A stretch of DNA of 64,000 nucleotides from Thalia democratica (lineage: Eukaryota): the NCBI GenBank assembly GCA_965202585.1, contig OZ241826.1, positions 71,734,001 to 71,798,000 on the forward strand, given 5' to 3'. The position numbers were made by a program, and so were the translations under genes. The notes below the pieces were generated by a model. It saw only the letters and a program-made list of their open reading frames with translations, made no database searches and had not been told where the DNA came from. This document shows, piece after piece, positions 10,341 to 50,600 of the stretch (position 1 is the stretch's first letter; the number at the start of each line of letters is the position of its first letter).

Positions 10341-10703
10341 TCACTCATTTTTCTCAGAAAATGCTTTTACTAGTGAGTACAGTAAAGGTACACTATAAGA
10401 AGAGTCACTTTCTTTAACATTCAACTCTTTACAAATAAAATCTCTATCCAATCTTCCATTTGGTTGTCCAGACTCAGCTACTAAAACAGATTCTGCATAT
10501 TTATAGTTGTTAAAACTTAAATACTCTCTTATTAGTTCATTTATCATTAGATTTTCGTTGCTTAGTTTAGGTTTTTCATTGCTAGGGTCATCTAAGGCTT
10601 TAAATACTGCTGCTCTCAGCTGAGACTGAACTTCATTTACAATTCCTTTACTTTCTAATGTTTCCAATAACACTTTTTTTAGTCCTTCAATAGTTGCCAT
10701 CAT
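10341..10703 (-). CDS. FOPNL: FOP N-terminal-like / CEP20 (LisH-type centrosomal protein), single coding exon, 120 aa
   Basis: MATIEGLKKVLLETLESKGIV..QLRAAVFKALDD..LSNENLMINELIREYLSFNNYKY..SVLVAESGQP..LDR.FI..ELN..PLLY matches FOPNL/CEP20 as I recall it over the full length. Confidence 0.92.
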   Translation of the reverse strand: MMATIEGLKKVLLETLESKGIVNEVQSQLRAAVFKALDDPSNEKPKLSNENLMINELIREYLSFNNYKYAESVLVAESGQPNGRLDRDFICKELNVKESDSSYSVPLLYSLVKAFSEKNE

Positions 10704-20812: not shown

Positions 20813-23800
20813 ATGGAAAACCAGCACAGCAGTTACCACCACTCCTTTTCTTACCCTCCTCACTTTTACTCCTCCATAGTTCCGAGGGAGGTCGTCAGTC
20901 AAAACTGGAGCCCGGCAAACCTCCATCACCACTTCCACGCCAAAAATCCCCGAACGTCGGAAAAAGCGAGCGAAAACCTGATAAGTTCAATAAGCGGTGC
21001 GAGCGAGGGAATTGGTGAGCAGCGAGTTTTCGAAAATGGCCGCCACGCTGTACGGAGCAGCAAAGTTCCTTATCAGTACTTCCAACAGCAGCACCCGGGG
21101 TTTGCGGCCAACAAGATTTATTTTCCTCGCATCAACCCCTTTTCCAACATGAGGCGCGCGTACGAGGAGAGCCGCTTCGAAGGGTACAAGTTTCCCTGGA
21201 TGAAGAACACCCGGTCCCATCATTACGAGTGGAAGCTTCAATGGCAAAGAGGTAACTTGGCCTTTAGACTTGGTTGAATTTTTTGATGGTCTTATAAAAA
21301 AATAAGTTTTTTTTTTTATAAAGTATCGAGCTTGGTTTAATAATATAAAAAAATTATAGAAATATAAACAACAAATTAAGAATAGTGTTATAAACATTAT
21401 ACATGTTTTGTTTTAAAGAAAGTAACAGATTAAATTTAGTGCATTCAAAACTATCAAAATTTTTAAACTTATATAAAAATACTTATATACTTGTATGCTA
21501 TTTTATTTTAACTTTTAAGCTAGTTGGTTGAAGTTGAAACCGATACTATAGAAGTATTTGTAAAAAAAAGTTATTTCTAAATCTTCTTAATTGTATATCA
21601 GCTTTAGTTTGAACACTAAAATAATTTTGACATCAACAACTGAATTATAAACGTCATTCGTAAAATTTTCCTATAGCTTAGTTTATAAAAAACTCTTAAA
21701 GGTTAAGAAAATGCGTCTTAATTATCTATAGACGTTAAAAGTGTCAATTAGTATTACTTAAATACTGGTAGTTGTAAAATTTTTATAACTTTAATGAGAT
21801 TATAAAGTAAACTATTCTACTAAAGTAGATTTTTTTATGTACTTTTTTACTGTTTGTTAAATTTGATATACATACGTAAAACTGATGATAAAAAAGCTTC
21901 ATATATGTATTAGTATTTAAAAAACTGAAAAATTTTTTTTTATTTTCGACATGCCTTAGTGTCTTTATATTCTGGGATTAACAACATGGATTTTAATTAA
22001 TTTGATATAGAAATAAAAGCATTAGCTCTTTCCTTCTTTGTTAGTAATAAAAATACTGTAGATTAAGATAAAACTTTAAATATCAATGTAAGAGTAATAT
22101 TTTTATTAATCAAAAAAAGCTTAATTTTAAAAGCTAGTAAATTTAAAAGAACCACGGTTTTAATTTACAAATCGTCTGTTATTATAATTAAAGATTTCAA
22201 AGTCTAAACTTTATTAAGTTGATAATTGACTGATTTTAACAGCATATAAATGTAAGACAGAACTAAAGTAATTAAAAAACTGGGTAGGTTATTCAAAAAA
22301 TATTCATAAACACAAACTAACTTAAAGTACAAAGTATACTCAAAAAATATGTTGCAAATAATTTTTAAATTATTATGTGACCTTGTTTATCAAAAACGAC
22401 AGGTTTTTTTGCAAAAAAAAAGAAAAATTATTGAAGTTTTTATTAAAGAGTTGTACTTTTTTATATTAAATATTTTCAATATTAATTATCAATATCATTT
22501 ATAAAATAAATAATTTTTTTCATAAAACTTCGGATAAAAATTAGTTTGTTGAAAAAAAAATTTCAACTGTAGAAAATAATTCATTTTAGTTTAATAGATA
22601 CGATAGAAATATCAACGATGAAAAATTTTGGTCAAAGGACCTGGTATATATAAAGACCTTTTGGTTATCGAGCTACGCTTTAAGACTTTAAAACTCTATT
22701 GTTTTAAAAGGTATCAAATATTTCAGTTAGTTAGTATAAGTTCTGTTACTACCGTATAAAGCATGTAGTAAAAAAAAACATGTACTATAACAACTTTTCT
22801 ATCGATATTCGAAAAAAAAATACTAGTAAAACTGCTTAATCTTTTAGTTTATATAAATAAAATAAAGACTGTAACAGTATACAGTTTATGTCTGTTTTGA
22901 AAGAATGATTGTCATTTAACACATAAAATTTTGTTCACGCCGAGTAACCTTCTAAGCACACTAGTGTGCGTATGTAAGCATGCTGTCTAGTCATAATAAC
23001 ATCATTGTAAGCATTTAAACATAACTACGAAAATTGTATATTTGCACTTCAAATTTTAGTGTAATTTTTTAAGCACTTCGCTATCAGGTATTAGGCCTTC
23101 TACTATCGCTTGTTTCATCTAGCAGAGTTATTTATTGTAATTTTTGCAAGCACTTGCACCCCATTTTACAAAACACAGTTTTTATATATCTAATTATAAG
23201 TCAATAACTTTACCTTATAACATTATTTATTGTGACGAAGTTAGATTTGATACTTCGTTTTATTTTGATCGTCTATGTCACGTTTAACTGCATTGCAAAA
23301 CTTTAAGGTATGAGTGTTTAGTCAAAACTACATACTTGTCTGTTTATTTTTAGAGTTTAGTTGGAAGAAATTGTTATTGTTAACGAAAGTTGCTAAAGAG
23401 TTTCGTTGTGTTATTTATGTTTCTATAAAAAAAATATATCATTAAAGTAGTTTTAAAACTATTTTCAAAAAAAAAATTGATTTTAAATTTAAGTTTATTC
23501 TAGCATCCAACAGAAACTATTTTAAGTTTATAATAAATAATGATTAGTTTAGTATACCATATTACAGTTTATAATTACAATTTATAACCAAAATTAAAGT
23601 TTTTAGGGAAAAACAGCCAAAATAAAGTTTTACCGAGCTATATTATCAACTAATTATATTTATAACAACTTTTTTTATATCTATACATATATACAATTGA
23701 CATTATTTAACTTAATAGATCTTTTCAATAGGAGAATAAATTTACAAAAAGACGTTTTTAAAAACTTTTTTGAACGAAATTATATCTATATTTATTTGCA

Positions 23801-26800: not shown

Positions 26801-29374
26801 TATTTTAGTTTTAACTCACTTTTGTTATAAAATATTACGGTTTAAGAACAATAAACATTTTGGTTTTAAAAACGTATAAAATGTTTAAACTTGCTGTTCT
26901 AAGAACTTTAATTTTTTTCAACAGTTTTGAGTTTGAAACAACTTCCTCTTTTTTATTACGCTAAAAAGTATATAAAAATGTTAAACATGTTCAGTAAAAC
27001 ACAAGTAAATTCAAAGTTAGTCGAACTATCTATGAGCTACTAGTTTTTTTTTTTAATGATACCTTTTTACGAACTGTAAAACAAAATGATTGTGCAAAAG
27101 TTACTCGATCCTAAAATTAAGGTTTATACATTAAAACGACAACTTAGCTTTTCTTTAATTTATGCAAATTTATGTTTCAAAAGCCATTACTTACATCTTT
27201 AACCAGGTAAAGCTTAAAGTAAATTTAAAGTTTGTAAGCTTTCAATAAAAAACATTTTCAAATATTTATAGCAATGGGTACAGTGCCGCCCCAAGTAGCC
27301 AAAAACAGAGAGGAGAACAAACGGACACGGACGGCCTACTCGCGAGGACAGCTGCTGGAACTGGAAAAAGAGTTCCACTTCAACCGGTACATATCAAGAC
27401 CACGAAGAATCGAACTGGCAGCCGGTCTCAACCTAACCGAACGCCACATTAAAATATGGTTCCAAAACAGGTTGGAAGCCTTGTTTGAATTAGACCAGTA
27501 AAAATATTTGTGGCATTTTTTTTACCTTCTCTAAAAATTTTCCTATTTCGTTAATTCTAGTACTCTAATAAAACTTAGTCTAACAATTAACTGAACCGCT
27601 TTATACATCGTAAATAAAAGCATATAACAAAACTAAATAGAAAGTTTTGAGATTAATTTAAGAATACAAGGTAGCTTGTAAGTAGTATATGATCTAATAA
27701 CTGGCATTTAGAATTTGTTATTCATACAACCTTGTGATTTTTTAAACACTATTGCGTTTGGACTCATTTTTTAATTATAAAGTTATTTAAATCTTAATAA
27801 AACGGATACATAAAAATACATACCTCCAAAAAACTACAAAACTTATAGAAAACAAAAAATATTTAACATGTATAATGTCAGGTGTTAATTTAAACTTGAA
27901 GTTTTCAACTTTACTCAACTAAAAATACAAAAAAAAATTCCAGTTGCATTTTGATGAAATTCATTAAAAAATAAATTACAGACAGCATTTTTTATGACAT
28001 TAATTAGTTTAATTTTAACAATTATTGTAACTACGGATACAATTAATCAAAACAACGTATAATTACAATTAATCAAAAATAACGTAATACGTTTATTTAA
28101 TTAAAACATTATCAGTATTACTTACGTTTTGTATTTATGAAATTTTGTTTTTTTAAAGCTGTTTGACTTACTTGATAATTTTTTTCTAATTGATTAAACT
28201 TTTGAAAGTACTGTTTACAAAATCAGCTTTATTTGTAGATTAACGAAAATAGCCGTTGAATAAACTGAAATTACAGCGCATTTCAAATAGAATCCCAATT
28301 AGCAATCTTTGTCTTTCTCTTTTTATCAACATTCAGCTGATAACTTATCAACTTGTTCATTATTCTCACGTTCTTATATTTGCCGTCAAACAAGGCAAAA
28401 TACACTTGTGCAAGCCTAAAGTGGACTTTAATTGTTTAAACAGCCAGCGTTTAGCAATTAGCAGATTTCATTTATTATGCAAAATCGTTTTTCCAATGTT
28501 TTCAAAATCCGATCAATCTCAACTGTTTGTAAAGTATTTTCATCGGATTAGTAACGATTATTAAGTAAATATGCAGCGAAAGTGAAACAAGATTAGCTAA
28601 TCTGTACAAATATTAGTAAAGCTATTAATCAATTAAGACAAACGATACTTCTTGCTACTATTTTTTAAGCTTTTACAATCAATGCTTATTTATCTTCTAA
28701 ATTCAAATCACTATTTATTTTACATTTCAACTAAATCTTGGATGTGTATGTTAAAAACCAAAACGAAATATGTTAACAGAAATGCTGAAAACAATTTTAA
28801 AATAGCAATACAAATAAACAACACTCATAATTTTTCTTGCACAAATTAATATTTACTGTCAGATTAACAGTGTTTAATGCTCACAAAGTTAAATAATTTG
28901 AATATTCGTACAGTAATTTCAGTTTTTTTATGATTTCAAATCTAAAATAATTGTTTATGATGGCTGTACAGTACAATAATAGATAAACTATGTTAAAGTG
29001 AACTTTATAATAAAAATAAGCATTTTTCTTATGTAAGAAAAATAGAAGTAACACTTTAACCTAAAATACTTTTAAATTAATTACTTGTTTAATTTCTGTA
29101 TAAGTTACTATGACCATTTATATTGAGAAACTTTATATTTATAAAGTTTTTTTGTAAATATGTTTCATTTTCGTATGGACTTTAAGTAATACCCTGATAA
29201 ATGCATTTACCAAATTTCAGGAGGATGAAGTGGAAAAGAGACGCAAATTGTTCATCAGTACCGCAAAATTTGAATGATAAAACACACTACAGTAGTGAAG
29301 AAACAAATTCAAATACTAACACCGACCAAAACACTTCCACAATGACTTTTTCAAACAACGAGTACAGCTTATAG
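20813..29374 (+). CDS. Xlox: ParaHox homeobox protein Xlox/Pdx (IPF1); exons 20813-21251, 27272-27470, 29221-29374; 263 aa
   Basis: Hexapeptide FPWMK followed by a Pdx-type linker (HHYEWKLQW). Homeodomain [60 protein letters not shown] has the Pdx-diagnostic His44. Splice phases 1 and 2 are consistent. Confidence 0.95.
24181..24720. promoter_or_regulatory. GC-richer non-coding island in Xlox intron 1; candidate endodermal enhancer
   Basis: Four GATA cores (24185, 24258, 24443, 24513) and a Fox-type TGTTTGTTTA (24535). No splice-compatible coding frame was found. Confidence 0.35.
25389..26149. mobile_element. hAT-type MITE (761 bp) in Xlox intron 1
   Basis: TIRs CAGTGGTCGGCAC and GTACCGACCACTG. 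Perfect 8-bp TSD CATTACAC at 25381-25388 and 26150-26157. Subterminal GGGGTGCA repeats. Confidence 0.9.
28230..28600. promoter_or_regulatory. Non-coding island in Xlox intron 2; candidate enhancer
   Basis: Palindromic double GATA TGATAACTTATCA (28338-28350), Onecut-like ATCAAT (28512) and Otx/K50-type GGATTA (28545). Confidence 0.25.
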
Positions 29375-32325: not shown

Positions 32326-35300
32326 ATGGACGGTGGACAGATTGCCCTGGTGGCCATTATTGGCTGCGAGGTCGCCGCCGTGGCAGGTCTCGTCACTTAC
32401 TTGCTTATTAGGCCAAGAAGACCGAAACCCGTTGAAGGTTTGACTTTTTTTGTACTAAAACTTATTTACGAGCTACTTGAAGCTGATTTTGTTTGTTTTG
32501 AATGAAAAAGTTTGAAAAATAACTATTCTAGGTAGAAGAGATGCTTTTTAGTATAAAATAACAATCTACGTTACCTTTTTATAATTGATCGTTTGATAAT
32601 TTATTATACAGATTTTTAAGTTTTTCTTATTAAAACGGTTTTTTAATCAAGTTTTAATTTTTGAGGCGTTTGCTTTTAAACGTTTACGTAGAAATTATAA
32701 AAAAATACAAATAAATAATTTTAATAATTTCTTTAAAAATATTTTTCTTATATACTTGAATATTATTAGTCTGAACTCGTATTCAGTTTTTAGTATTTTA
32801 AAACTAAAACAGCGGCGGCTAAAAATAGCTATGACATGTTTAATTTCGAAAAATTTGCATGTAAAATGCACACACGATTATTTAAAGTTGGTCACGATGT
32901 AACGTCAGATCTTAGAATCTTAGCTGTTCAACTTATAAACTTTTAAAAACACAAACATTTCAGACAACTCTTGTTGTGAGCTTTCGTAAACAAGAGTCAC
33001 ATTAAATTTCAAAAAGTCTGTAACTGATAGCAACCACGCCCGCTACTTTTTTCGTTTATCCTAAGGCACACGCAACATTTGCGCTGTGCATTCCGATATA
33101 ATATTACATATTGACATTTCATTCTTCCCACACAAACAGGGGAGCACGAATTCGTTCAATCACTTGCCTCATTAGCTCTTACATTTGATTTTGTTGGGCT
33201 GTTAAAATATAGTTTAGGAGCTGAGTTATTCATGTTTAAAGAGTATTAGTTAATCTTTGTTTCATGCATCGATCTTTTTCTTTAAAAAAACATCTTGTAA
33301 CCACAGAAGAAATACTTAAACATTCTTTAAGGTTAAATACTTAGTTAAAATGGCAACACCACAAACTACATACTTTCTTAATCGGATTAAAGTCATTTAG
33401 TTTTAAAAAATTTGTAATTGTGTATAATTTCATGCAAAGCATCTATTTCAACATCTGGTATATCATTTTTACTTAAAATTTCAAAATTTTTAGAAAAACC
33501 AAAGCTAAGGCCAGAAGAGACAATAGCAACTGTGTATGGAAATCCAGAAAAAGATGAAGAGCCTGCTGAAGTAGTTATAACAATCGAAAAGGTATTTTAC
33601 AACAAATCGTATTAAAAGCAAAACTGTTCTTAGGTTATCATAATTTAAATCCAAAAAAAAAGAGTTTATGTTTTGTAAGTTTTGTCTTTAAAATTTCTTT
33701 TTGTAACAGCCCGACTCAGAGAAAGAAAGCGATGTAGAATCAGGTAAGTTTTAAAGTTAAATTATACTTAAAATTTACAATTCTAAAAAACTTTGTATTT
33801 TTATTTCAGTAATATCAGAACCAGACAAAAAGCCCCTGGAAGAAACTGTAATTCAAGTCGAGTCTGATGAAAAGGTAACGATTTTATGTTTTCTATTTTT
33901 TCACAATCACTGAAGTACTTTAATTTGCGACTTAACTATTAACCAATAAATTAATTCACAGGAAAGTAGCTCGTCTTCAAGCAGTTCCTCGAGCAGCTCG
34001 TCGGAAAGCGAAAAGGAAGAGGAGGAACCGGACAGATCGGTCGTCATAGAGATCGAAGCTCCCGCCGAAAAAGCTCCCTCCATGTCAAGCTCGACGAGCG
34101 TTTCCGACGTAGCGTCCCTTCCCAAAGACCCTGAGCAAGTCGTTGTGATAGCCGTGGAACCGGAGGAAAGCTCCTCATCGAGCAGCAGCTCGTCTGAGGA
34201 GGAGGAGCCGGAAGTGCCCGTGGTTGTGGTCGTCGAGGCGGAGGAAAAACCAGCGAGCTCTTCATCGTCTTCGAGCTCTTCTGAAAGCGACGAGGAACCG
34301 GAAACGGTCGTCGTCGTCGTTCAAAAGCCGGCGTCGAGCTCTTCCAGTTCTTCGAGCGAGAGCGAAGCAGAACCGGAAGTCGTTGTCGTCGCGAAAGAGT
34401 CTTCGTCATCAAGCTCGTCTTCCGAAGAGGAGGTTGAAGTAAAGACCGTTGTAGTTGAACTCGTGGAAAAACTACAAAGCTCTTCCAGTTCCTCGAGCTC
34501 TTCAGAAAGCGAAACGGAAGATGAACCGGTCGTCGTTGCAGTTGTCACTAAAGAAAGTTCTTCTTCTTCGTCAAGCTCTTCCTCCGAGGAAGAAAGCGAA
34601 ATTGAAGTGAAGACTGTTGCAGTCGAACTCGTGGAAAAACAAGAAAGTTCTTCTTCGTCATCGAGCTCTTCGGAGAGCGAAAAAGAAGATGAGCCGGTCG
34701 TCATTGCGGTTGTTGCCAAGGAAGAAAGTTCTTCTAGCTCTTCCTCGTCGGAGAGCGAAGACGAAATTGAGAAGATCGAAGTTGTTGTCGACACCATGGT
34801 CATTGCAACTTCGAGCTCCTCCTCTTCTTCCGCTTCGTCTTCTTCCTCATCTTCATCGGAAAACGAAGAAGAGCCTCCGGTCGTGGTCTCGGTGAAACCT
34901 TTAAGCTCTTCGTCGTCCAGCAGCGAAGAAGAAATTCAACCGGTAGTGGTCGCTGTTGTGCAGCAGCAAAAACCACCGTCTTCTTCATCTTCTTCTTCGT
35001 CAGAGAGCGAAAATGAAACTTCTACGCTCAACGTCGTCCTCAAAAAAGTAGTGAGAAAGAGCTCTTCGTCTTCTTCGTCGTCTGCGTCTTCCAGCGAGCC
35101 TGAAGGCGAAGTCAAAGCCAAAGTCAAGCACTTCGAGTCGAGAACGACCACCGTGTTTGCGAGAAAGGAAAAAACGAGCAAGGAAGCGGCCAATTTGGCG
35201 GCGGCGACCTTTTCCGACAAGGAAGTCGAGAACATTTTTGCGTCAGCGGAAACTCAAACGGCGCCGAAGACGAAGCCGAAGCGCCGGAAGAACAAGCAGA

Positions 35301-38300
35301 TCCAGACCGACCGCTTTACCACTTCGAGCTCAAGCTCCTCCAGTTCTTCATCTTCTTCTTCGAGCGACGACGTCGGTCCTCGCGTGCTGACCGCAAGCCC
35401 GCTCAACTTCGTCCCATCGCCGGAAGATGGCGCCGTCAGCCCGTACTCGATCGCTACCATGACGGAAACGGTGCAGGTCAAGGCGGTGAAGACGAGAAAG
35501 GTGAAGAGGAAGAACAAGAAGCTGCAGACGAACTTGGTGACGGAGTCGGACTCTTCGTCGAGCAGCTCTTCGACGTCTTCCAGCGAGTACAGCATCGACG
35601 CCAAGACGCCGAAGCGCAAAAAGAAACAAGTAAAAAGGTTCGGTTTGATTTTTGGAAATAAGTAAAACAAGATATTATAGAGTTCAGCTCAAATTAAGTG
35701 ATAATAAAATAATTAGTCCTAAGACAATTAAGAAAATTAAAAATGAAATAAAGAAAAAAACAGTAAAAATGTTTCTTTTCCGTCAGGTTCATGTCTCCCG
35801 CCCCCGCAACGACAAGCGAAAGCGAGCGAGCCACTTCTCCGACGACCTACTCGACAAAGTACTTCTACAACGTTAACAAGGAGCAACGTCACCGAACGAC
35901 AGCGCACATCGACGTGAAGAGCGTCGTCACCGAAGAGCAAGGTTTGTTTTGAAACTACTTGTGTTATTAGTCTGATTTTTTTAAGTATTAATTTAACAAT
36001 TAAAAGTATTTACAAATATAAAAACCCTTGCTCTGGTTTTGTTATAGGTGTTTTAGTAGAAAAAACACTTCTTCATATTACATGGTCTAAATATAATAAA
36101 GTTATAATTAAGCTTAAATAAAATGATTGAAAACATTGAAATTTAGTAAAATTGCATTATAATATGTAAATAATAAAAACTTGTAGAACCAAAGGTCATA
36201 ACAGTAGCATCGCCACCAAGAGTCACTTCTCCGTTATCGTCTGACGCCGAAATACAAGCCATTCAGCTCGCCGTGAGTTTAAACACTTTTGCAATAAAAT
36301 CATACCAGGCAGCTTTTTAAACTCTTCTTTGCAGGATGAAGGCACGCAGACAATCAGCTTCAAAGATTCGTCAGTCGTTCAGTCAACACCGCGACCTAAA
36401 ACAAGGTATAAAATTTTGTAACTTTAGTGATCTTTTCACAATGTTATTTTGTTCGTATTTGTTATTTAGGCGAGAGAAGTTCTTTATGTCGGGTTGGAAC
36501 AAACGGGTTTCCAGTCTCGATCTCATCAATGCCGGTATCATTGAAGAAACTACCATTGAAAAGATTGAGCTAGGTAAAATGTGATACTTACCATCAATTA
36601 TTTTCTATTATATTTTCTACCCTTATGTAGCTTTAAAAAATATAGCTTTTTATTTTAATATGTAATAACTAAATCAAGTACAAGTAAAATTATAATAATG
36701 TTTTAAGTACTTTATAAAGATAATAGTTTCTATGTTGTACTTTGAAAGTAAAAACTATTTACATACCTTCATTTACCTTTTAGAACCGCATAAAAATATA
36801 TCTTTATTGTGAATACTACAAACAAGAACTTTGTTTAAGTGACGTTTTTTATCTTTATAAATACTCTAAAAAAAAAATTTCTTACTTATGATTTTTTAAC
36901 GTTTATAAACTTACACTGAATAAAATAAGCTTAACATATCCTCAAAAATCTTTAAAGTACAAGACTAAGTATTAGTAAACTTGTTTTTTGTTATGAACTA
37001 AGTTTTTTATCTTACTTTCAAAACTATCTTTGAACTAATATATTTGTAACATGTACTTACTCAACATAAAAATTCAGGTGAGATTCTTGAAGAAGAGGTA
37101 GAAAGATCAATTCATCAATATTTAGTTGGTGAAGAAGCAATTGCTGGTGTTATCAATGAAAATAGTGAAAAATTGACGCTTCAAGATGCTTACAAAAAAC
37201 GATTATTGAAGAGAAGTTTGTAAATTTATATGTATGAAATGTTGAAAATTTTAGTAAGTGTTTTGTAGGACGACAGTTTAAATGAGTTTAATTAGATATA
37301 TAATATTTGAGTTCACATTACATGTCTGACAACTTATGTCAAAGTTTAATAACTTAAAAGACTGCTACACTTAAATACTTTTCAATAAAAGTATTACTAA
37401 TAATTTTTTGTTCTTTTAATAATCATAGGAACAAACTTTTAATTTTTCTTTAATATCTGATAACAATAAAACACTTATATTAAATTACATTTTTTAATTT
37501 TTTTCAGCAAACACTGATAGCATATAAAAAAAGCTATAAATAATAAAAACTAAAGTAACTACAATACACTCAGATTTCATAAAATACTCTTAACCTGTTA
37601 CTGTATACAAAGTTAAATTGATAGAACAAAATTTTTAATAAAATAATGAATAAATGAACCATAATTAGTTTTCTTGCTTGGAAAATTTATTGAGCCAATT
37701 TATCTATAAAGGTATTTACGATCAACTTATGTCACGTTTAGTATTTAATTAATGATGTTTACTTCAACCAACATTAAAAGATCTTAAACTCTTAATAATA
37801 GTTATTTACGTATAATATTTATACACAACAAACAAATATTATTTTATTTCAGAATAACAATACAGCAAATGTTTTCCGTATAAGGTTGAACAAAACAATA
37901 ATTTAAAAGTATATTTATATATTTTTTCAAAGTGATATAAACATAATAAAAAATTCTGAATACTAATATTTCTAAAATAATTCAGCGAAGTTGTTACGGT
38001 CATAAATTAAAAGTTTGTTTTAGTTTGTTTAAGTAAAGCACATTTACTTTTGGCGTGATTTATTAGTTTTCGCAAGAGTTTAGTTAATAGGATAAAAATT
38101 AAGATAAGCAAATTAATTCATCAAAATATTAGTGTTTTATAAGTAAAAATTCTGTAACTATACAGGTACTGTTGTGAGCCTATTAGAGGCCCAAGCAGCT
38201 ACTGGAAGAATAATAAATCCATTGGATGGAGAAAAGATGTCTGTTGATGAGGCTAGAATCAAGGGTTTAATTGATCGACAATTTGAAGTTGTTCTTAGAA

Positions 38301-41300
38301 GGTAAGTACTTCATATAAATATATTTTTTGAATTATTTATAATTACAAAGCATAAAAACTTAACAGTGATTTATGTTGCTAGTCTTCTACTTTAAATAAA
38401 ATCTCTATATTGTAAAACTTACTTTGATAAGTATTATTGTTTTAAATAACTAATACTATCTGTTGGTGGATATACTAATGCATATATTTTATTTGAACAG
38501 GTTTACTATTTAATTTCACGTATATTTTAGTTATTATACCAATTTCATTGAAGGAAAGGTAAGAAGTCAGAAGTTTGAACTTGATTAAAATTTTAAGTAG
38601 AAGTAGTTCTTTTACGTTTTAGTAACTAAAATTTTCAAACGCTTCTTCTCTGACAATTAACTTGTAATTCAATCGACTTTGTTTAATTTTGCAAGTTTTA
38701 GTATATGATGTTCAATCGTTTTGATTTACAGGTAGAAACCTTTACTACTTTGATTAAATTTATGTTGTTAAATAAAAATAGAAGTTACTAAGTTTTCTAG
38801 TTAGTTTTTTACTTATTTTTTTTCTAAACCTAGTTGATGGTAGTACATTAATTTAAATGTTATTTGCTTATAGCACTTTGAAAAAATTGTAAATTTTAAG
38901 AGTTCATAAACCAGTTTGTGATTAATCTGTTTTAGTAACTTACCTATAATTTAACATATCTCTAAATATTTTAATCAATTAACATCAGAGCTGAGAGAGC
39001 AGTGACAGGTTTCGGGCGAAACACGAGCGATACGAAGATGATGTCGTTGTTCGAAGCGATGAACCGTAACATTGTTGTAGAGCAGCACGGAATCAGAATG
39101 TTGGAAGCACAAATTGCTACCGGAGGTACTTTGACTTTTTGATTAGTTCTTATACTTGGTTATTGTAGATTTTTGTTTTATTTTCGCTAGTATATGATTT
39201 TAATTTTAAAGTTATGTATTATTAGTGTATTAAGTTCCATATTATACCACAGGTCTTCATTTTATAAGTATAAACATTGTTTCCAACCTAGAATTTTTTT
39301 TAACTTTATTTAACTTGACTAATAGCTATCTTGAATTGACAGGAATAATCGATCCGAATGCCAACCATCGCTTGCCAGTGGAAGCTGCATTCAAGAGAGG
39401 ACTTTTTGACAACAGGCTCCACAGAATATTAGAAGACCCGAGCGATGACACCAAAGGCTTCATTGATCCGAACACAAACGAAAATTTGTCCTACCTCGAA
39501 CTAATGGGAAGGTTTTATATATTTTTAGCAAATTATTTACATATTTAACACATGCTTTTTTCTATAACTTCTGTATAACCTTTGAATTAAAAAGAACTCA
39601 CTAAATAAAAAAAACACATTTAATTTTTTTCAGATGTATAATCGATAAAGACTACGGTCTTCGACTGCTTCCGTTGTACAACCTTCAGTCAACGAGTAAA
39701 AGTTCAACTTCAACCACAACAACCACTATAATTACAGAAGAAATTACTGAATCAAAAACTAGAAAGTCTTCTTCAAAGTTTGTTCTTTTGTTTCCTAATT
39801 GAAGTTTTTTTTGTCCTATTCATTGTTTTACCTACAAGGCTTTGCCTTTTGTTTACCTTATTAACTTACTTGTTTTTATGTATGTAAAGTAAGGTGTTTC
39901 ATTAAAACTAGTTGCCAAACGTTTCAATAAAAAATAATCTTAAAATCATTAATAATTTCATCATTCTACTTTCTAACTACCACTTGTTGGTTAAATAGCC
40001 AACTTATTATCAAGAAAATTAGTATGATTGTTAAAAAGCTAGTGATAATTACTTAATGCATAAACTTATTGAACATAACAAAATTAAAAAAGGAAATCTA
40101 GAAGAGATATGTTCTTCACATCTGGTTGGCAGAGAAAGGTTTCAATTCAGGACCTGATGGATGCCGGTATCGTTACTGAAGAAACAGCTGTTAAAATGGA
40201 AGAAGGTTCTTGAGTTATTTTGTATTATACGACAACTTTAATACATCAATAATGACTTTATTAAATAAGCTTATGATAAATGTTTATAAAAAACTGATCT
40301 TTAAATGCTATGATCACCAAATATAGATTAAGTAGTACATCTTTGAAATAAAATACATTTTTACAAACTGCAACAACCGCTCGTTTCTTTGTTTTAAGAA
40401 TAAAGCAAACATATGTTAAAGTTAATAAGAAATAATTTATGAGATAAAATTTTAAATTCTAAGTAGAATAGTACATACATTGAATTTTTAAATAATTTTT
40501 TTTTAATTCAAACATTTTTAAAAAGCATTGTTTTTAATTAAATAAAAAAAAAAATTCAATCATATAATTAATATTAAAAACAAAAATTAAGTACAACACA
40601 ATTAATTTTAGTAATTTAATGTAAAAAAAATAAAAAGTATAAAATTTATAAAAACTATACATGTATATTTACATTACTATTTTTTAACTAGGGGCAATTA
40701 GTGAGGAAGAAGTAGAAAACCAGGTTAAATTGTATTTGGTTGGTGAAGAACCAATAGCCGGGTTACTAATGGTTGAAAGTGGTGAAAAGTTGTCCATTTA
40801 CCAAGCTTGGAAGCGTGGATATATAAGAAGAGGTAGTTTTACATTAAAATACTAATTTTTAGAATCAACATTTATTTTACTTAGTAATGGTATATCTTCA
40901 AGCAACTGAACCTAATTTTTTTACAAGCTTTTAATTTTGTTTTATTTAGGAACATCAATTAATTTGTTGGAAGCTCAAGCTGCTACGGGAAGAATCATCA
41001 ACCCAGTGACGGGGGAAAAGCTTTCGGTTAAAGAAGCAGCTAGCAAGAAATTAATTGACAGACAGTTTGAAACGTCACTGTCTAGGTTAAGATTTTTATT
41101 TCTGCTAAAATCAATTTATCAAAAAGTTTTAAAGATTAAAAACGTATAACAAATCCAAGGTTAATTTTGATTATCACAAACTGAAATGTTTTTGGTTAAG
41201 TAAGTTTAGTTTCAACAAAGACTGTTTCGTAAAACTTACTTATCCTCGATTTATATAAACTTCAAAACAACTACATTGCGGTTTGAGGTTTCCTACAATC

Positions 41301-44300
41301 TTTTTTCTAATTAAGCGACATGTAATATAAATTAAACTTCTTAACAGAGCCGAGCGCGCAGTGACCGGCTACAAAACGCGAACGCTTCCAAAACCCATTT
41401 CGCTGTTCGAAGCGATGAAGCGAGAGCTGGTAGTCGAAAGCCACGGAATTCGTTTGCTGGAAGCGCAGATAGCAACTGGAGGTATGTTGCGGTTGAATTC
41501 CGTTTGTTACACGCAACTTGGTGTAAATTTAAAACCCTGGAGCTTAGAGCAAAATACTTAGTTTTAGAATAATTTGACGTCTTTAAAAACTGTGTATTAA
41601 TTTTAACGTTAAACTTTGATGCTTGTAAACGTTTTTCCCCTTTTTAAAACTATCAAATAATCGTCACTTTTTTAATACCCTTTTGAACAATATTTATTAA
41701 ACATATCTATAAACTTATTTAAGACAAATGTTTAATACAAAATAAGTATAAGTTTTTTGAAAGTTCCATTTTCTAAGAAAAAAAATAACTTAAACGTAAT
41801 AGATTAAAAAAAGTACTTGTGTATATAAAAAAAATGTCTAGGAATAATCGATCCTAATGCAAACCATCGTTTGCCCGTGGAAGCAGCTTATAAAAGAAAC
41901 TTGTTCGACAAACGTCTCCATGCGATCTTGGAAGATCCCACAGATGATACCCGAGGCTTCTTCGATCCCAACACCGAAGAAAACCTTACTTATCTTGAGT
42001 TAATGGAAAGGTTTAATAAAGAAAAACATAAATTTAATGTTTACATGCTTAAGCTTGTTTTGTACTATATTTTCAAGTCAAAAATACCAAATTTTTTTTA
42101 AGTATAAAAATTAAAAATGTTGTAATAAAACTTTTATTTTCAAAAGTAAACTGTTGTGTTTTTTTTCAATTTCTTATTTTTAAGAATTTTGCCAATAGCT
42201 TTAAATAAAACAGATGTGTTACTGATCAGGACACGGGTCTTCGTCTTCTTCCTTTCATGCAGATGCCGGTGAAGCACGCGTCTAAAGTATCATCAAAGGT
42301 ATGTTGAAAGTTTCCAATAACTATTATTTAAAGAAAAATATAATTAAAAAATATAAGTAAGTAAACATGTAGGTATGTAGAAATCATATCTCAAAGTTAT
42401 GCTAAATCTAAAACTACACTTGAGAAGAATTTTATAATATAAATTTAAAAAAAACTTTAATTTAAAGATGCTGTTCGAGTCTGAGAACAAAGCGGAGGTG
42501 TACATGAAAGACATCATTGCCGCGGAGCTCGTTGACAAAACGACAGCGGAAAACTTCGAGAAGGGAACGATGACCAAGGAGGAGGTGAAGAGAATAGTGG
42601 CGGAACTGAGGGTGTTCGTCGACGGAACAATGCCCATTGCTGGAATCATAAATGCAATGACTGGTACTTTTTCATGCATAAAAATCACTACTTTTAATTT
42701 TTGAATTACTTTTTGACGGGTGCTTATATTTTTACAAATACAAATCGTTAACAACTGTTTAGATTTCATGACTAACTTTTTTGATACTTAGACTGTTTTT
42801 CAAGATGTTGAATAAAAAAAACATTGAAGGTGAGAAGATGAGTATACTGGAAGCCACAAAATGCTCGTTGATCCGAAGAGGAACAGCTTTTGAGCTGTTG
42901 GAAGCGCAAGCAGCTTCGGGAAAAATCATCGACGTCCAATCAGGAAAGTCGATTTCTCTTGAAACCGCTTTCAACACCAACGTCATTGACCGGTTTGTAC
43001 AAAGCTTTATCGATTCCTTTAATATGATAATTGATATCAAAAGTAGTTAAACTTAACTTTTTGGTTTTTATATATATTTATTTATTAATAATTGAATTAT
43101 AGAGAGTACGAAGATGTGGTAAGGAGAGCATACAGAGCAGTCGTCGGGTACCGCGAACCTTTCAAGCGTCAAGTGCTTTCGTTGTGCGAAGCTATGTCGA
43201 GGCATTTAGTATTTGAAAAACATGCAATAAGGTACAATTAAAAATCAGTATACTATACTTGTTTTTAAGTAACAACTTTTAACCACATTTCTTAACTACA
43301 TATCATAATAAGAAAAACTGAGACCTAGTTTACTAACAACCAACTTTATATCAGGCTTTTGGAAGCGCAATTGGCAACTGGAGGTTTTGTTGATATAAAA
43401 TCACCGGTGAGAATAAGCGCAGACGTTGCGGCAAAGCGTGGCTTGCTTGACTCAACATTGGCTGATAAGCTGGGTAGCAAACAAACAAAGAGTTATTTCG
43501 ATCCAGTAACTGGTGAAAATCTAAACTATTCTGAACTTATGGGAAGGTTAGTTACTTACCAAACTTTTACTTACTTTGTTATGATTTAATAATTCATCAA
43601 ATTTTACAATGTTTTTATTATAAATTAATTAAGACCTAAAAGTTGTTAATGGAGTCTCAAAAGTGATATTTTACAAAGTGTTGAAAGCCTTTTAAACTTG
43701 GTAAGGCTATAAGTGTTTTCCGAAAATAAATAATTTTTTTTATTTTTTTTTAAATTTCAGTACTTTAACTGTTATAAAACATTAAAAACTAAAGTTCAAC
43801 TTATAGAACATTAAAATTTAAGGGTTGTAAAAACTAACTACAACTTTCAAATTTAAAAAGTCCTCAAAAAATATTTTTTTTGTTTATATAGTGAAATGTA
43901 CCTAAAATACAATACAAAGTATTTGTATCACAGATGCGTGCTGGATAGAGACAGCAACTTGTTGTTCCTCATGGTTGAAGGTGGAACGGTTACAGGAAAC
44001 ATAAGACCGTTCGAACCACAACCTGAGAGAAAACGAATCAGGGTAGAAGAACAGCTTGCCAACGTGAGACTGAAGGTTTGAAAGAACATTTAAACGTATT
44101 TTTACAAAAAATCATATGTACTGGTAACAAACTTAATCAATTTCACTAGTTGTAAAAACTTAAACAACGTTACGAAAAATTCATTAGGTTGTAAAAGCAA
44201 AAAGGAAAAAGAAGAGCAAACGCAAGAAGGAGAAAAGGTCCTCATCGGCGTCAGGTTTTCTGTCAATAAATAAACTCAGTAACATTTTTTTCTTTTTCTA

Positions 44301-46265
44301 AACACCTTTTTATATTTTTCAGAGTCGTCTTCCAGCAGCCGGCCGACGTCTCCTTCATTTTCGGGTGACAGCAGACCGACTTCGCCCTCGATTCTCAGCA
44401 GGAAAGTCGTCATCGTCGATCCGGTCACCGGCGAGGAGCTCTCCATTCACCAAGCCCTGGCCAAGGAGCTCATCGATCGGGGAACGGCAGACGAGCTTCT
44501 GGCTCAAGAAGGAGAGTTTACTGAGGAGTCGACTCAGAATTCACCTGTTCCTGACGTTGTTGAAGAGGAAGAAAAAAAGGTTGAAGACGCTCAAGTTGAA
44601 GTAACTCAAGTAGTTAGTGAGACAGCAACTGAAGAAGTTCCTATCATCATAAGTGAAGAGACGGAAGTAGTAGAAGAGACTCCGGATGTTGAAAAGGCAG
44701 TAGCGGTCGAAGAAACTTTGAAGCAGGTTGTAGAAGAAGTTTTAGAATCAGCTGAAACAGTTGCGGTCGTTGAAGAAGCTGCAGATGTACAATCGGCTGT
44801 TGTGATTGAAGAAGCTGCAACTGAAAAAGAAACTGTGGTTGAAACTAAGGAAGATACAGCAGTTTCTGAAGACAATAATAAAGAATCGTCTTTCGTAGAA
44901 ACTGTCAAAGAAGCTATCGAAGATTTCTTTGATTATGACAAAGGAGAAGGTGTTTCTCGAGAAAGGCGATCAAGCTCTTCAAGCTCTTCTAGTTCAAGTT
45001 CCAGCTCAGACACTTCAGAAGATTCTATAAAAGTCGAAGAAAACCAAGTTGAACTGGAAGAAATCCCAGTTACTGTAGTGGTTGAAGAAGCTGCAGTTGC
45101 TGAAGAAGCTGCAGTTGCTGAAGAAGCTGCAGTTGTTGAAGAAGCTGCAGTTGTTGAAGAAGCTGCAGTCGTTGAAGAAGCTGCAGTCGTTGAAGAAGCT
45201 GCAGTGGTAGAAGAAGCTGCAGTTGTTGAAGAAGCTGCAGTTGTTGAAGAAGCTGCAGTTGTTGAAGAAGCTGCAGTTGTTGAAGAAGCTGCAGTGGTAG
45301 AAGAAGCTGCAGTTGTTGAAGAATCTTCGACTGCTGTAGAAACTCAAGGTGTTCAGGAAGCATCTACTGCTGAGGAATTTACAGATGCTGTAGAAGATCT
45401 ATCACAAACTGCTGTTGAAGAAACTAAGATAGCTGAAGAGAAGGAAGCGTCTTCTTTTGTAGAAACTATCAAAGAAACAATCGAAGAGTTTTTCGATGGT
45501 GACAAAGAAGAAAGTATGTCTCAAGGACGAAGGTCAAGCTCTTCAAGCAGCTCTAGTGACAGTTCAGCAACTTCAGAGGAAAATCAAGCTGAGCTAGAAG
45601 AAATTCCAGTCACTGTAGTCGTTCAAGAAATTTCTACTGCTGAAGAAGTATCAGTTGGTCAAGAAGCCTCTACTGTTGAAGAAACTGATGAATTTAAAGA
45701 TGCTATAGAGGATTTATCACAGGCTTCTGTTGAAGAAAGTAAAGTAGCTGAAGAAAAGGAAGATTCTTCTTTTGTGGAAACTATCAAAGAAGCAGTCGAA
45801 GAGTTCTTTGATGACGACAACTTAGAAAGCGTGTCTCAAGGAAGAAGATCAAGCTCTTCAAGCTCAAGTGACAGTTCAGAAACTTCAGAGGAATCAGTTA
45901 AAGTAGAAGTGATTGTAGAAAAACCAGAAAATGAAGTTGAGTTGGAAGAAATTCCTGTAACAACAGAATATTCAGTTGAAGCCGAAGAAGAGCAACAAGC
46001 AGTTGTGAAAGCCGAAGGATCAAGCAGCTCAGTTCACGTGGAAACGTCAAGTTTCAGCAGCGAAGGCGCAGAGATCAGACAGACGAGCGCATCAACTTCA
46101 ACTTTGTCGACTCACCACCAAACCGTCGAGAGGTTCTCGTCGGTGGAGACGGTTGAGCACCGTTCAGTTGTCGTGACTACAACCCAAACCGTACAGGAGC
46201 AGCACTTTGAAACCAGCGAGCAAGTAGTAGTTGAAAGCAGTCAACAACCAGATACTAAAGAGTAA
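32326..46265 (+). CDS. Membrane-anchored plakin-repeat (plectin/epiplakin-like) protein, 27 exons, about 2241 aa. Exons: 32326-32437, 33494-33591, 33710-33743, 33810-33874, 33962-35637, 35787-35941, 36187-36272, 36335-36405, 36470-36573, 37078-37215, 38166-38301, 38989-39125, 39343-39511, 39634-39777, 40102-40205, 40692-40832, 40950-41085, 41348-41481, 41842-42010, 42214-42298, 42468-42663, 42830-42992, 43103-43231, 43355-43546, 43934-44075, 44188-44254, 44323-46265
   Basis: Repeated plectin-repeat signatures ([71 protein letters not shown]) and a plectin-type linker ([24 protein letters not shown]). All junctions are GT-AG, phases chain without stops, and the total of 6726 nt is divisible by 3. 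Confidence 0.88.
33962..35130 (+). repeat. Coding low-complexity repeat: (Ser)7-17 - acidic - Val-rich - Lys modules of about 27-35 aa, roughly 13 copies
   Basis: Examples: [25 protein letters not shown] and [26 protein letters not shown]. Confidence 0.9.
45084..45317 (+). repeat. Coding 18-bp minisatellite, 13 units ([12 protein letters not shown])
   Basis: GAAGAAGCTGCAGT(T/C/G)G(T/C)(T/A) repeated in frame. Confidence 0.95.
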
Positions 46266-47688: not shown

Positions 47689-50600
47689 TCACCCATAGGA
47701 ACTGTTATTAATAAACGCCTGTCTGGCCTTCACAAAAGCCAGTATGTCAGCGTCCGTATCTTTGTCGCCCGTCAGCGGAATGTCGCTTTGCGTGTAAGTT
47801 GATTTCGCAGGCGAAGACTCGGGTGTCGACTTCATGAAGCTCTGGCTGGAAACCGAGTTGTGGTGAGATGGTTCGGACTTGAGCGTGCTGCTCAAAACTT
47901 CATCGGAACTGTATTTTGACGAAGAATAATGATTGGCTGGTTTGTAAGAAGGATTTTCGCTGACAATCGCTGATCCAAGTGGCTGGCTGTCAGGCGGCCT
48001 GTTGCTCCGCTGAGGTGTCTGCTTGCTCTGCTGCTGGCTGATCCACCACTGCTCGAAGTTGTTTTGTATCTGCACCCTGCTCTTGTTGAGGATGTGGTGC
48101 AGATGATCGATCTCCGTCTTCATCGACTTCAGCATCTGGAAGCTCTTCGAATATCTGCATAAAAGAGTAAAATCTAAAATGTTCTGCTAGTTTATTGTGC
48201 ATGCAGCTATTCATATTAAAACAAAATATTTGACTTGTACTACAGTCTTACTTGGATTTCCACTCGTCGATCTGTTTTCTGATCAGGTCTTCTTCTTCTT
48301 TTGCGTCTTCTTCGCTTTGTGACGTCATATCACTGTTCATCTGATCCAGAATGTTTTTCAAATGGTCTATATACAAAGTTTTATTATAAGTGCAGTTTTT
48401 AAATACGTAAACAACATAAGTTTGTTTTTTTTCTATATGAGATTTAGCATAAGGTTATTACTGACATGGTAGTTTTATAACTATCATTTAGGGGAAAAAT
48501 TGTTTTTGTTCATTAACTTTATACAATGTCATTAACTATTTAAAACGAGAACCTTATCATTAGCGTGTAACTGTTTACAGTAAAATCAAGTATATAAAAA
48601 CAACAAAAAAATATAATAGTAAGTGTAAAATTCATATAATTCCAAGGTATTGTCCAAAATAAAAGGTTTCAAACTTAACAATTTTGTTACAAAGTTATTC
48701 TTATAACTACATAGAGATTAGCACAAACTCCATGTTGCTACTCTTTGTACTTACTACTGGAGCAAACAACTAACTTAGTATTTATCTAAACTTTGAGGTG
48801 AAGATGTTTTTTATTTAGCTTTAGTCAAACGACTGTTTGTACTTTCTTACAGAGTCTTACAAGTCTTACAGATATTCAGAAATATTTAGTACTTAGCATC
48901 ACCTAGGTAATGTTTTTGATTTGGCATAAAATTTATCACAGGCGATGCTTAATTCATAACTATGTGGCATTTATTTTCCGGGAATGATTTCTACATGAGT
49001 AACCCGTTTTTCATCGATAATATTGTAATATAACGACGAAAGCTTTGAAAATTTTGTTTGGTTTATTTCATTTGTTATTTTGTTTTGAAAATCTTATAAG
49101 CATTTGCTTCAATTAATTCACAATGTATAAGGTGATTTATTTAGATTTTGGAATTTTGTTTTTGACCCTGGGTTTTACGGCCACCGACACTAGTACTTAA
49201 TTACGGCTTAACTATTTTAATAAAATAAGTGTTCTGCCGGGGTGTACGAAAATTTAATTTCGGACAATTCAAATTCCGACAACTCAAATTCTAAAAAAAA
49301 AATTTTAAAGCCACAACTTAAAAAGTAGAATTTATTTGGAAAAAAAAAATATGTATGTTGGTCTTATTGATATCTACAAGCCATTTTTTTCTTTTTGTAA
49401 AATAATAAAAAAAATTTTGATATGTCTAAAATAAGTCTTTAAATATACTTATTTCTATAATTTTTTAAATATCTTAAGAAATATTTAATATTTTAGAAAA
49501 AGAAAAAAAAAGGCTTGTAGATATTAATAAGACCAACACACTTTTTTTTTCTTAATTATATAATACTTTTTAAGTTGTGGCCCTTTGAATTTATTTTTTA
49601 GAATTTGAATTGTCGGAATTTGAATTGTCATGTAACCGTTCTGCCGCATTTAATCAAACTGATTGTAAACTCTAGAAAATTTGTCTAGAACTAATATTCT
49701 AATTGCAACTTTGCTTGTTTTAGAAACATACTGTTCACATATTCAACTTAATTTTTCACACAAATTAACTTACTGATTTTATTTCTGGCATCGTTGACCT
49801 TTTGACCGAGCTGTTTTGCTTCAGAATAGCGAATTTTCAACGTTTGTTTTTGATCTTCCAGCTTTGAGTAGTTTTCGTTCTTTTGTTTGTAAATTTCAAA
49901 GGCTGCTTTCTTTGCTTCAGAATTTTCAGAACCTACAACGATATTTATTATATTCGAGAAAATATTCTTTGTAGAACAATAAACCTTATCTAAAATAATC
50001 TTTTTAACAACAAAATGCTGTATACAGATTTTCTACTTTTAAATGTTTTAAAAACACTTTTCTTAAATTATTTCATTACTAACGATCGAGATATACAATT
50101 ATAAAGATTAATTAATTGCTGCAGTAATAATATATTAAACTATAATACATTTCTAACAAACAAAATTTTTGTGTAATGAGTTAAAAAATACCTTTCACCC
50201 TAAAAATACTTTCAAAAATACATTGTACTGCATATACCACAGATGTTTTTGTGTTAAAACTTTATTCCGACTAACGGCGTTTCACTGCTCTCAAATACAG
50301 TTAAGAACAGATCTACAGAGATCTAGCTTATCAGGGTCTCTAGGATTTAATTTAATGTTACATATTAAACTGCATATACCTCTTTGTTAGATGAACACTT
50401 ATAAAAACTCCTACCTCTATTAACAATGACATTATCTGCACTGTTGGGTTCGCCAGCCTCATTAATCAACCTGCTGCTGCTAGATTGCTTCATTCTTTCC
50501 TTCTTCAGCATATCAACCAGGATAGCTGACAAATTATTTAATTTTTTTATAAAGTTTTTTTTTTAAGAAATTTTGACAAAATTTGCTTAAAGTTATGTTC

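Follow-up and report, generated by a model that had tools for sequence, protein, structure and literature searches.

Two FFAT-like motifs in a lineage-only acidic repeat extension of a tunicate plakin-repeat protein

Protrudin (ZFYVE27) is an integral membrane protein of the endoplasmic reticulum (ER) that contains the FFAT-like motif EAEPDE-EFKDAIE-ET (review table). Its binding to VAP has been established experimentally and is sensitive to the D4A exchange. Other confirmed VAP partners also have a non-aromatic residue at position 3 of the motif, namely ASNA1 (EFEDAPD) and FAF1 (DFEDATE) (review table). We analysed a 64,000-nucleotide stretch of DNA from Thalia democratica (the window) that encodes a plakin-repeat protein with a seven-residue core identical to that of protrudin. 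As in protrudin, the core is preceded by an acidic flank and followed by an acidic residue. The two proteins share no sequence relationship outside the motif, and VAP binding by the Thalia protein is a prediction. Furthermore, protrudin contains one copy of the motif, whereas the Thalia protein contains two copies in a tandem repeat. The motifs of ASNA1 and FAF1 resemble the Thalia motifs in their EFxDAxE/D pattern, in their acidic flanks and in their scores (1.5–2.5 in the same scheme), but these motifs are experimentally confirmed and belong to cytosolic proteins that are unrelated to plakins.

The rest of the Thalia protein has other relatives. Its plectin repeats (PF00681) are shared with the vertebrate plakins plectin, desmoplakin and epiplakin, although matches to fragments of epiplakin and desmoplakin are comparatively weak (31–43% identity). 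In contrast to these plakins, the window protein has a predicted membrane anchor, and we saw no N-terminal plakin domain, rod or actin-binding domain. Plectin contains six plakin repeat domains; the window protein contains two plus a lone repeat. The closer relatives are tunicate proteins. The best named one, 'plectin-like isoform X2' from Ciona intestinalis (P0128), is 58% identical over the compared region; both proteins have a hydrophobic N-terminal anchor, a Ser-rich region, plectin repeats, a VVKAKRKKK linker and a matching last repeat. Membrane-anchored plakin-repeat proteins of this kind are also represented by Styela clava LOC120325800 (P0153) and by the MERC transcripts P0129–P0131. 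Databases already name this tunicate family 'plectin-like' or 'desmoplakin-like'. A full-text literature search returned no top-ranked paper that links FFAT motifs with plakins, and none on tunicate membrane-anchored plakin-repeat proteins.

The gene is both spliced and expressed, as judged from RNA contigs and from the spliced marine transcript P0121. All features described here lie on the + strand. The probable first coding exon (32326–32439) translates to MDGGQ, a 23-residue hydrophobic segment and RPRRPKP. Homologous N-termini are found in Ciona P0128 (MEGGLIAITAVLAAL...) and Styela P0153 (...GLVGYLLYRPRHRRK). This exon, which is assigned to the gene by homology rather than by RNA, probably encodes an N-terminal membrane anchor, which would leave the remainder of the protein cytosolic. 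The short N-terminus, the hydrophobic segment and the following RPRRPKP would, by the positive-inside rule, place the tail on the cytosolic side, and plakin repeats are cytoplasmic by nature. Between the anchor and the plakin repeat domains, translation reveals a low-complexity open stretch rich in Ser, Glu and Val (33950–35662). Comparable Ser-rich regions are present in Ciona P0128 and Styela P0153. The exons for the two plakin repeat domains (36321–44075) are identified by Pfam Plectin matches and, from 40830 onward, by GT..AG joints in RNA (40830>40948, 41083>41346, 41479>41840, 42008>42212, 42294>42464, 42662>42829, 42991>43102, 43229>43353 and 43544>43932). Four exon pieces match Plectin with 31–55 bits, above the Pfam gathering threshold of 20.5. 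On the exon pieces, Pfam found nothing beyond Plectin and one sub-threshold match to LED_rpt (22.8 bits versus a cut-off of 59), which lies on the EEAAVV array described below and was rejected as a low-complexity artefact.

A small exon (44188–44254), bounded by the RNA joints 44073>44186 and 44250>44319 (the latter with the cut at +4), encodes the basic linker that also occurs in P0121 and Ciona P0128. The acceptor cag of the last exon ends at 44322, and its phase fits the small exon. The last coding exon (44323–46265) comprises 44323–46262 as coding part and a TAA stop codon at 46263–46265. Three parts of the protein are encoded here, namely a linker rich in Ser and Pro, the last plectin repeat and the acidic tail, which is Ser-rich and about 560 residues long. 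The last repeat (44412–44498; PF00681, E = 2e-07, 31.2 bits, cut-off 20.5) corresponds to residues 31–59 of the translated segment 44322–46262 and aligns with the last repeat of the Ciona and MERC orthologues. The reading frame through the tail runs for 660 codons without a stop (44283–46262), while another frame of the same exon contains 63 stops; the GC content of the window is 27%. P0121, a spliced MERC transcript, runs through the second repeat domain and the linker into the tail, up to EFTDAVE, and it crosses the joint between 44188–44254 and 44323 without a break. Together with the GT..AG joints in RNA, this transcript shows that plakin repeats and tail belong to one transcript. The assignment of the tail to a plakin-repeat protein in the original prediction is thereby borne out, and the family can be described further as one with an N-terminal membrane anchor. 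Its architecture very probably consists of a predicted N-terminal anchor, the Ser-rich region, two plakin repeat domains, the basic linker and the lone last plectin repeat.

The tail does not replace the terminal plakin repeat domain of plectin, as had been proposed. It is an extension that follows the lone last repeat, about where the orthologues end: Ciona P0128 stops 26 residues past this repeat and MERC P0129 stops after 13. P0153 and P0129–P0131 likewise end shortly past the last repeat. Since the orthologues share the rest of the protein but stop at this point, we conclude that the tail is a lineage-specific repeat expansion. A phmmer search with the last 313 residues against 1.84 billion representative proteins returned zero homologues, a search of the genome with the tail unit returned only the unit itself, and pattern matches to the tail in JGI metagenome contigs included no relative. 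The more solid result of this analysis is the description of the tail as a species-lineage extension within an uncharacterised family of tunicate membrane-anchored plakin-repeat proteins. We are confident that the last exon of this gene encodes a lineage-only acidic repeat extension with two FFAT-like motifs.

Two kinds of repeat make up the tail: a tandem array with an 18-bp unit, and a longer unit of about 105–115 residues that occurs in three diverged copies. The array (45073–45323; Tandem Repeats Finder, 13.9 copies, score 432) encodes (EEAAVV)n. The three units were delineated by MAFFT alignment. Unit 1 (44760–45083) contains the FVET..FFD, RRS(n) and ELEEIPVT blocks and lacks EFxDAxE. 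Unit 2 (45318–45623) and unit 3 (45624–45971) both contain EFxDAxE as well as FVET..FFD and ELEEIPVT. The five heptamers that had attracted attention as FFAT-like are distributed over these copies and are thus not five independent events. Units 2 and 3 are 78% identical in nucleotide sequence and differ at 24 synonymous-only and 27 non-synonymous sites among 101 aligned codons.

All five heptamers lie in frame at the places given in the original prediction, which also gives the protrudin motif correctly, and EFKDAIE is preceded by TVEETD. We scored them according to Mikitova and Levine (2012, Table S2A), where a score of 2 or lower is the cut-off for detectable targeting. For 18 confirmed binders, our implementation came within 1 unit of the listed scores and never gave a better one. 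By this measure two of the five are FFAT-like. EFKDAIE in unit 3 (45690–45710; flank TVEETD, followed by D) scores 1.5, the same as protrudin, and EFTDAVE in unit 2 (45375–45395; flank EASTAE) scores 2.0, at the published cut-off. Both values are inside the range of experimentally confirmed binders. The other three heptamers fail. DFFDYDK in unit 1 (44922–44942) scores 4.0, having Y at position 5 and K both at position 7 and in the flank; EFFDGDK in unit 2 (45486–45506) also scores 4.0 and sits at the end of a predicted helix; EFFDDDN in unit 3 (45801–45821) scores 5.0 with D at position 5. The charge index of the six residues upstream is 4 for TVEETD and 3 for EASTAE, versus 1–1.5 for the FFD heptamers, which have K in the flank. 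Across the entire gene span, read in the three + frames, EFKDAIE and EFTDAVE are the only matches that score 3 or better.

A receptor for such motifs is available. VAP is encoded in the genome, and FKVKTTAPRRYCVRPNSG and the FFAT-binding segment KHKFMVQ are retained. The MSP domain of the species' own VAP is split over at least three exons, and the Logan-derived 'VAP' proteins, which were exon open reading frames with intron junk, were set aside. The complex was instead predicted with a 33-mer around EFKDAIE and an annotated zebrafish VAPA fragment that contains the fish MSP domain. Three runs gave ipSAE values of 0.41, 0.42 and 0.41 versus 0.03 for the best control, which the tool grades as 'weak support'; by its calibration, passes in this range are 'more often wrong than right unless the guess was likely beforehand', and the score is uncalibrated for peptides and may reflect memory of solved MSP–FFAT complexes. 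The runs agree in at least 80% of contacts, and the partner pLDDT is 49. A single-sequence AlphaFold2 model has a mean pLDDT of 47, with low-confidence helices (about 54–63) over the EFxDAxE and FVET..FFD blocks (residues 16–34, 39–62, 121–138 and 149–162 of the translated segment 45324–45960). The description of the heptamer context as acidic and Ser-rich is therefore accurate, while its description as disordered applies only in part. According to criterion B of the published FFAT scheme, a motif in a helix cannot fit the MSP groove. The low-confidence helices predicted over both EFxDAxE motifs would hence count against docking. In addition, high-scoring FFAT motifs can fail in cells, as reported for PfPITP and PfVPS13L2.

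These observations suggest the following mechanism. The two EF[T/K]DA[V/I]E motifs of units 2 and 3, with their acidic flanks, would bind ER-resident VAP by fitting into the FFAT groove of its MSP domain. The result could be a low-affinity, possibly bivalent link between tail and VAP. The tail might tether the ER in trans or, as the ER residence of protrudin suggests, engage VAP in cis. The adjacent RR-S(n) tracts are candidate phosphorylation sites that could add negative charge. We consider VAP docking in cells via the two predicted motifs possible, at somewhat less than even odds, and a link of the tail to the ER plausible. The full reading is that a pelagic tunicate lineage recently gained a repeat-built acidic tail with two working VAP-binding motifs on a membrane-anchored, intermediate-filament-binding plakin-repeat protein, and that this protein links filaments, its anchoring membrane and ER VAP. 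To this reading we assign a probability of roughly 0.25. Its last element had been put forward as a three-way membrane/filament/ER tether, a proposal that our results do not support in that form and that remains conjectural: protrudin is itself an ER membrane protein, so an FFAT motif alone does not imply a contact site. If the motifs do bind VAP, this would be the first plakin-repeat protein known to us that carries a motif for direct binding of an ER receptor. The tail would moreover show cleanly how a short linear motif can be born de novo and then duplicated inside a lineage-specific repeat, and would be a dated example of FFAT birth. The relevance for contact-site biology and motif evolution would be modest, as FFAT-like motifs abound and the present one lacks conservation.

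Conservation of the heptamers in orthologues had been set beforehand as a test of the VAP-binding idea, and the outcome is negative. Ciona and another pelagic tunicate lack the tail, and none of 11 tunicate relatives contains a motif that scores 2.5 or better. As the tail is missing, its conservation in orthologues could be examined only through the plakin part of the protein, and the orthologues show no conservation of the FFAT key residues above that of their neighbours. This result counts against VAP docking. Inside the lineage itself, units 2 and 3 and the variant transcripts retain the key positions, though not significantly above background. Key positions 1, 2, 4, 5 and 7 are identical in the two units, which differ only at positions 3 and 6 of the motif; this identity is not significant, since 73% of the aligned positions are identical anyway. 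Transcripts P0121 and P0126 share 94% identity with the window across the region searched; in both, a 20-residue block around EFTDAVE is unchanged and the neighbouring array is shorter.

The strongest alternative is that the FFAT-like matches are by-products. EFxDAxE may have arisen once by chance in a young, fast-evolving and polyanionic repeat with many E, D, A, V and S residues and been copied by unit duplication, so that the action of the tail would lie in its bulk properties. Its role might be that of a spacer or bristle, hyper-acidic and open to phosphorylation, or of an intramolecular competitor for the basic filament-binding groove of its own plakin repeat domains. Phospho-regulation of the desmoplakin C-terminal tail offers a comparison. 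A published study (PMC4782060) reportedly shows how intermediate filaments are recognised by plakin repeat domains. We regard this alternative as a serious contender, although we would not expect it to be correct in most such cases. The absence of the tail from orthologues and from the searched databases is in its favour, as is the absence of the motif from unit 1. So is the composition: the 647-residue product of the last exon contains 145 E, 97 S and 29 D and carries a net charge of roughly -136. The length of the EEAAVV array varies in the population (a contig of the X3 set skips 162 bases, and the array is shorter in P0121), as do several in-frame indels in the tail. Among the population differences listed (40 of 236, too thin for a selection test), the tail variants comprise 10 synonymous and 9 non-synonymous changes, which points to only moderate constraint. 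In favour of VAP docking, the sole variant listed inside EFKDAIE is a synonymous G>A at 45710. Chance alone is also not negligible. When the tail was shuffled 5000 times with its composition preserved, 1.2% of the shuffles contained at least one motif scoring 1.5 or better and 4.6% at least one scoring 2.0 or better. Two motifs at 2.0 or better appeared in 0.12%, but the good pair stems from a duplication, which brings the effective P to about 0.01–0.05. A chance of 1–5% per such tail is not small genome-wide. On the other hand, the core matches a validated motif at seven of seven positions and has a good acidic flank, and, despite synonymous divergence at 24 of 101 codons, the two units retain every key position. 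The controls score far below the docking prediction, and the conserved blocks of the unit (EFxDAxEDLSQ and another) argue for a sequence-specific rather than a bulk function.

The same blocks lead to a second alternative, which we consider unlikely. The repeat unit may dock a partner other than VAP through the helix-like SSFVETxKExxExFFD block and/or EFxDAxEDLSQ, or through ELEEIPVT, and the FFAT likeness would be coincidental. SSFVET..FFD and ELEEIPVT are kept in all three units and are thus better conserved than EFxDAxE. The conserved stretch at EFxDAxE continues for four residues past the FFAT core (EDLSQ), and the AlphaFold2 helices cover both the EFxDAxE and the FVET..FFD blocks. Against this possibility, the blocks match no known domain or motif family in Pfam, confidence in the helices is low (pLDDT 54–63), and there is no candidate partner. 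One specific version, an AKAP-like RII-binding helix formed by FVET..FFD and EFxDAxEDLSQ, was rejected because even a permissive RII-binding consensus misses these blocks and matches only the EEAAVV array and one 12-residue stretch. In the VAP-docking mechanism, too, the three FFD heptamers are not VAP motifs. They form the C-terminal end of SSFVETxKExxExFFD, the most conserved block of the unit, which may be an amphipathic helix-like element. One population variant falls into such a heptamer: G>T at 45488 changes E to D at position 1 of EFFDGDK.

The gene that carries the five heptamers is genuine and expressed, and they fall in its last coding exon. The open frame at 44283–46262 comprises 660 codons and closes with a TAA stop at 46263, and an alternative frame in the last exon has 63 stops. 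In marine metatranscriptome contigs, GT..AG joints connect the exons of the plakin repeats with a small exon (44188–44254, + strand), which codes for a basic linker and has RNA joints on both sides, and this exon in turn with the last one. Since the acceptor ends at 44322, the last coding exon begins at 44323 and runs to 46262 (+), followed by the TAA; the phase agrees. P0121, a spliced 519-residue transcript from a marine eukaryote catalogue with 94% identity to the window across the searched region, covers the second plakin repeat domain and the linker and continues into the tail as far as the EFTDAVE block. Population contigs and P0121 show indels whose lengths are divisible by three or which offset one another, so that the reading frame is preserved. 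Pfam places plectin repeats both in exons further upstream and in residues 31–59 of the last exon's product. The GC content of the tail exon (44323–46262) is 44%, compared with 27% for the whole window.

The product of the last exon has 647 residues, including 145 Glu, 97 Ser and 29 Asp. In its tail, a unit of about 105–115 residues is present three times, in diverged form (units 1 to 3: 44760–45083, 45318–45623 and 45624–45971, +). The first block of this unit, EF[T/K]DA[V/I]EDLSQ, occurs only in units 2 and 3; the second and best conserved, SSFVETxKExxExFFD, occurs in all three; RR with a serine run and ELEEIPVT follow as blocks three and four. With this layout, the five heptamers represent two elements, one present twice and the other three times. 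The duplication is not recent, since units 2 and 3 share 78% DNA identity and differ by 24 synonymous-only and 27 non-synonymous changes over 101 aligned codons. Repeat detection also found a tandem array with an 18-bp unit that encodes (EEAAVV)n (45073–45323, +); the array differs in length between the assembly, population RNA contigs (162-base skip) and the transcripts P0121 and P0126. A 12-residue stretch at 44718–44753 (+) fits a permissive AKAP RII-binding amphipathic-helix consensus, but is only a lead, as the same loose consensus matches the low-complexity array.

All five heptamers were found exactly where the original prediction put them, in a single frame, but as FFAT-like motifs only two hold up. 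We scored them with the Mikitova–Levine scheme (Table S2A, PMC3261905), which counts sub-optimal elements and for which its authors describe detectable targeting at two or fewer (PMC3261905). As implemented, the scheme gives protrudin 1.5 and places 18 confirmed binders within one unit of their review-listed scores, never more generously. EFKDAIE (45690, +) scores 1.5 and EFTDAVE (45375, +) 2.0, and these are the only sites scoring 3 or less over the entire gene span in all three forward frames. DFFDYDK (44922, +) and EFFDGDK (45486, +) score 4.0 and EFFDDDN (45801, +) 5.0; judged by these scores, the FFAT claim should no longer include the three FFD heptamers. The proposed identity with protrudin was right: its VAP-binding motif is EAEPDE-EFKDAIE-ET (PMC9213790), and D4A abolishes binding (PMC3261905). 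The confirmed VAP binders ASNA1 (EFEDAPD) and FAF1 (DFEDATE) have a non-aromatic position 3. Among 5000 composition-matched shuffles of the tail, a site with a score of 1.5 or better arose at least once in 1.2%, and one of 2.0 or better in 4.6%. Allowing for the two sites being duplicates, P is effectively about 0.01–0.05, which for a genome-wide reading is suggestive, not compelling.

The expectation that orthologues would conserve the heptamers failed: they lack the tail, and no relative carries a good motif. A tail homologue was found neither among 1.84 billion representative proteins, nor in JGI metagenomes, nor elsewhere in the same genome. The family came to light when the plakin part of P0121 was used as query: among named relatives, Ciona intestinalis "plectin-like isoform X2" (P0128, 885 residues, 58% identity) matches best, followed by marine-transcriptome orthologues (P0129–P0131, 63–64%) and then by Styela and Ciona paralogues. 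P0128 resembles the window protein in its N-terminal hydrophobic anchor, Ser-rich region, plectin repeats, VVKAKRKKK linker and last repeat. In contrast to the window protein, P0128 terminates 26 residues past the last plectin repeat, and P0129 13 residues past it. Within the genome that the window comes from, the second repeat domain of P0129 is matched best by the window locus, making P0129 an orthologue instead of a paralogue. In 11 tunicate relatives, no site reached 2.5 or better; the top-scoring ones (3.0–4.0) are the structural GFFDPNT within plectin repeats. Absent from orthologues and without homologues, the tail and its motifs are a lineage-specific addition. We can securely describe the tail as an extension, built from repeats, of a membrane-anchored plakin-repeat protein of tunicates; it is no replacement for the terminal plakin repeat domain of plectin, as had been proposed. 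The source organism is a tunicate occurring in open-ocean metatranscriptomes. Directly after the last plectin repeat, a short acidic-aromatic motif that is not FFAT-like is kept across tunicate relatives (window 44580–44612, +; P0128, 858–868; P0129, 650–660; the tunicate relative P0137, 274–284), nearly C-terminal in Ciona and P0129.

Within the lineage, units 2 and 3 are identical at FFAT positions 1, 2, 4, 5 and 7 and differ at positions 3 and 6. EFTDAVE is unchanged next to the length-variable array, and among the variants listed the sole one inside EFKDAIE is synonymous. This retention is not statistically strong: identity extends to 73% of all aligned unit positions, and the variants listed for the tail divide into 10 synonymous and 9 non-synonymous. 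The main rival to VAP docking is an origin in composition: the matches would be a by-product of acidic residues and duplication, and the tail would work by bulk charge or would compete, under phospho-regulation, for the basic groove of the repeat domains. We regard this explanation as tenable but doubtful.

We give a probability of roughly 0.4 to docking on VAP through both EFxDAxE copies, in units 2 and 3. The genome codes for a VAP orthologue, spread over exons, that retains FKVKTTAPRRYCVRPNSG and KHKFMVQ (FFAT-binding K and M). A complex predicted from an annotated zebrafish VAPA fragment (residues 1–130, containing the MSP domain) and a 33-residue peptide around EFKDAIE gave ipSAE values of 0.41, 0.42 and 0.41 (best control 0.03), which recall of solved MSP–FFAT complexes may inflate. 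The partner pLDDT was 49, and at least 80% of contacts were shared between runs. In a calibration that excludes peptides, 51 of 78 solved complexes passed the mark, as did 2 of 108 mismatched pairs, and scores up to 0.60 comprised only 5 solved complexes against all 4 passing mismatches. The model lends weak support to EFKDAIE docking into the MSP domain. An AlphaFold2 single-sequence model of units 2–3 is mostly of low confidence (mean pLDDT 47), with helices (pLDDT 54–63) drawn over EFxDAxE and FVET..FFD blocks alike; these count against VAP docking, since an FFAT motif must be extended for binding. That a different partner recognises these conserved helix-like blocks is unlikely; the three readings are not fully exclusive. 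EFKDAIE and EFTDAVE would be new candidate cases of a known motif type. The exact match to the motif is in protrudin, which is listed among ER membrane proteins (PMC9213790), so that even genuine VAP binding would not by itself prove the proposed three-way contact-site tether.

The N-terminal membrane anchor of the original prediction, for which 32326–32439 (+) is the candidate exon, is corroborated by N-termini of Ciona and Styela proteins that are homologous to it. Several tunicate plakin-repeat proteins annotated as plectin-like, desmoplakin-like or uncharacterised (P0128, 1–35; Styela clava LOC120325800, P0153, 1–40; the further relatives P0146, 1–40, and P0150, 1–20) begin with a hydrophobic anchor and, after it, basic residues. 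From these shared N-termini, membrane-anchored plakin-repeat proteins seem to make up a gene family in tunicates, with several paralogues. Further plakin-repeat loci of the window's own genome lie on C5 and C6.

Upstream of the plakin-repeat gene, an open stretch with a hexapeptide-like YKFPWMK and a stretch coding for a homeodomain (20789–21274 and 27238–27498, +; PF00046, E = 6.4e-20) look like a Hox-type gene. An exon for a FOP N-terminal dimerisation/LisH domain lies at 10344–10709 (−; PF09398, E = 7.4e-20), and an exon matching the KIF9 domain (47692–48186, −; PF23735, E = 5.8e-12) closely follows the plakin-repeat gene, on the other strand.
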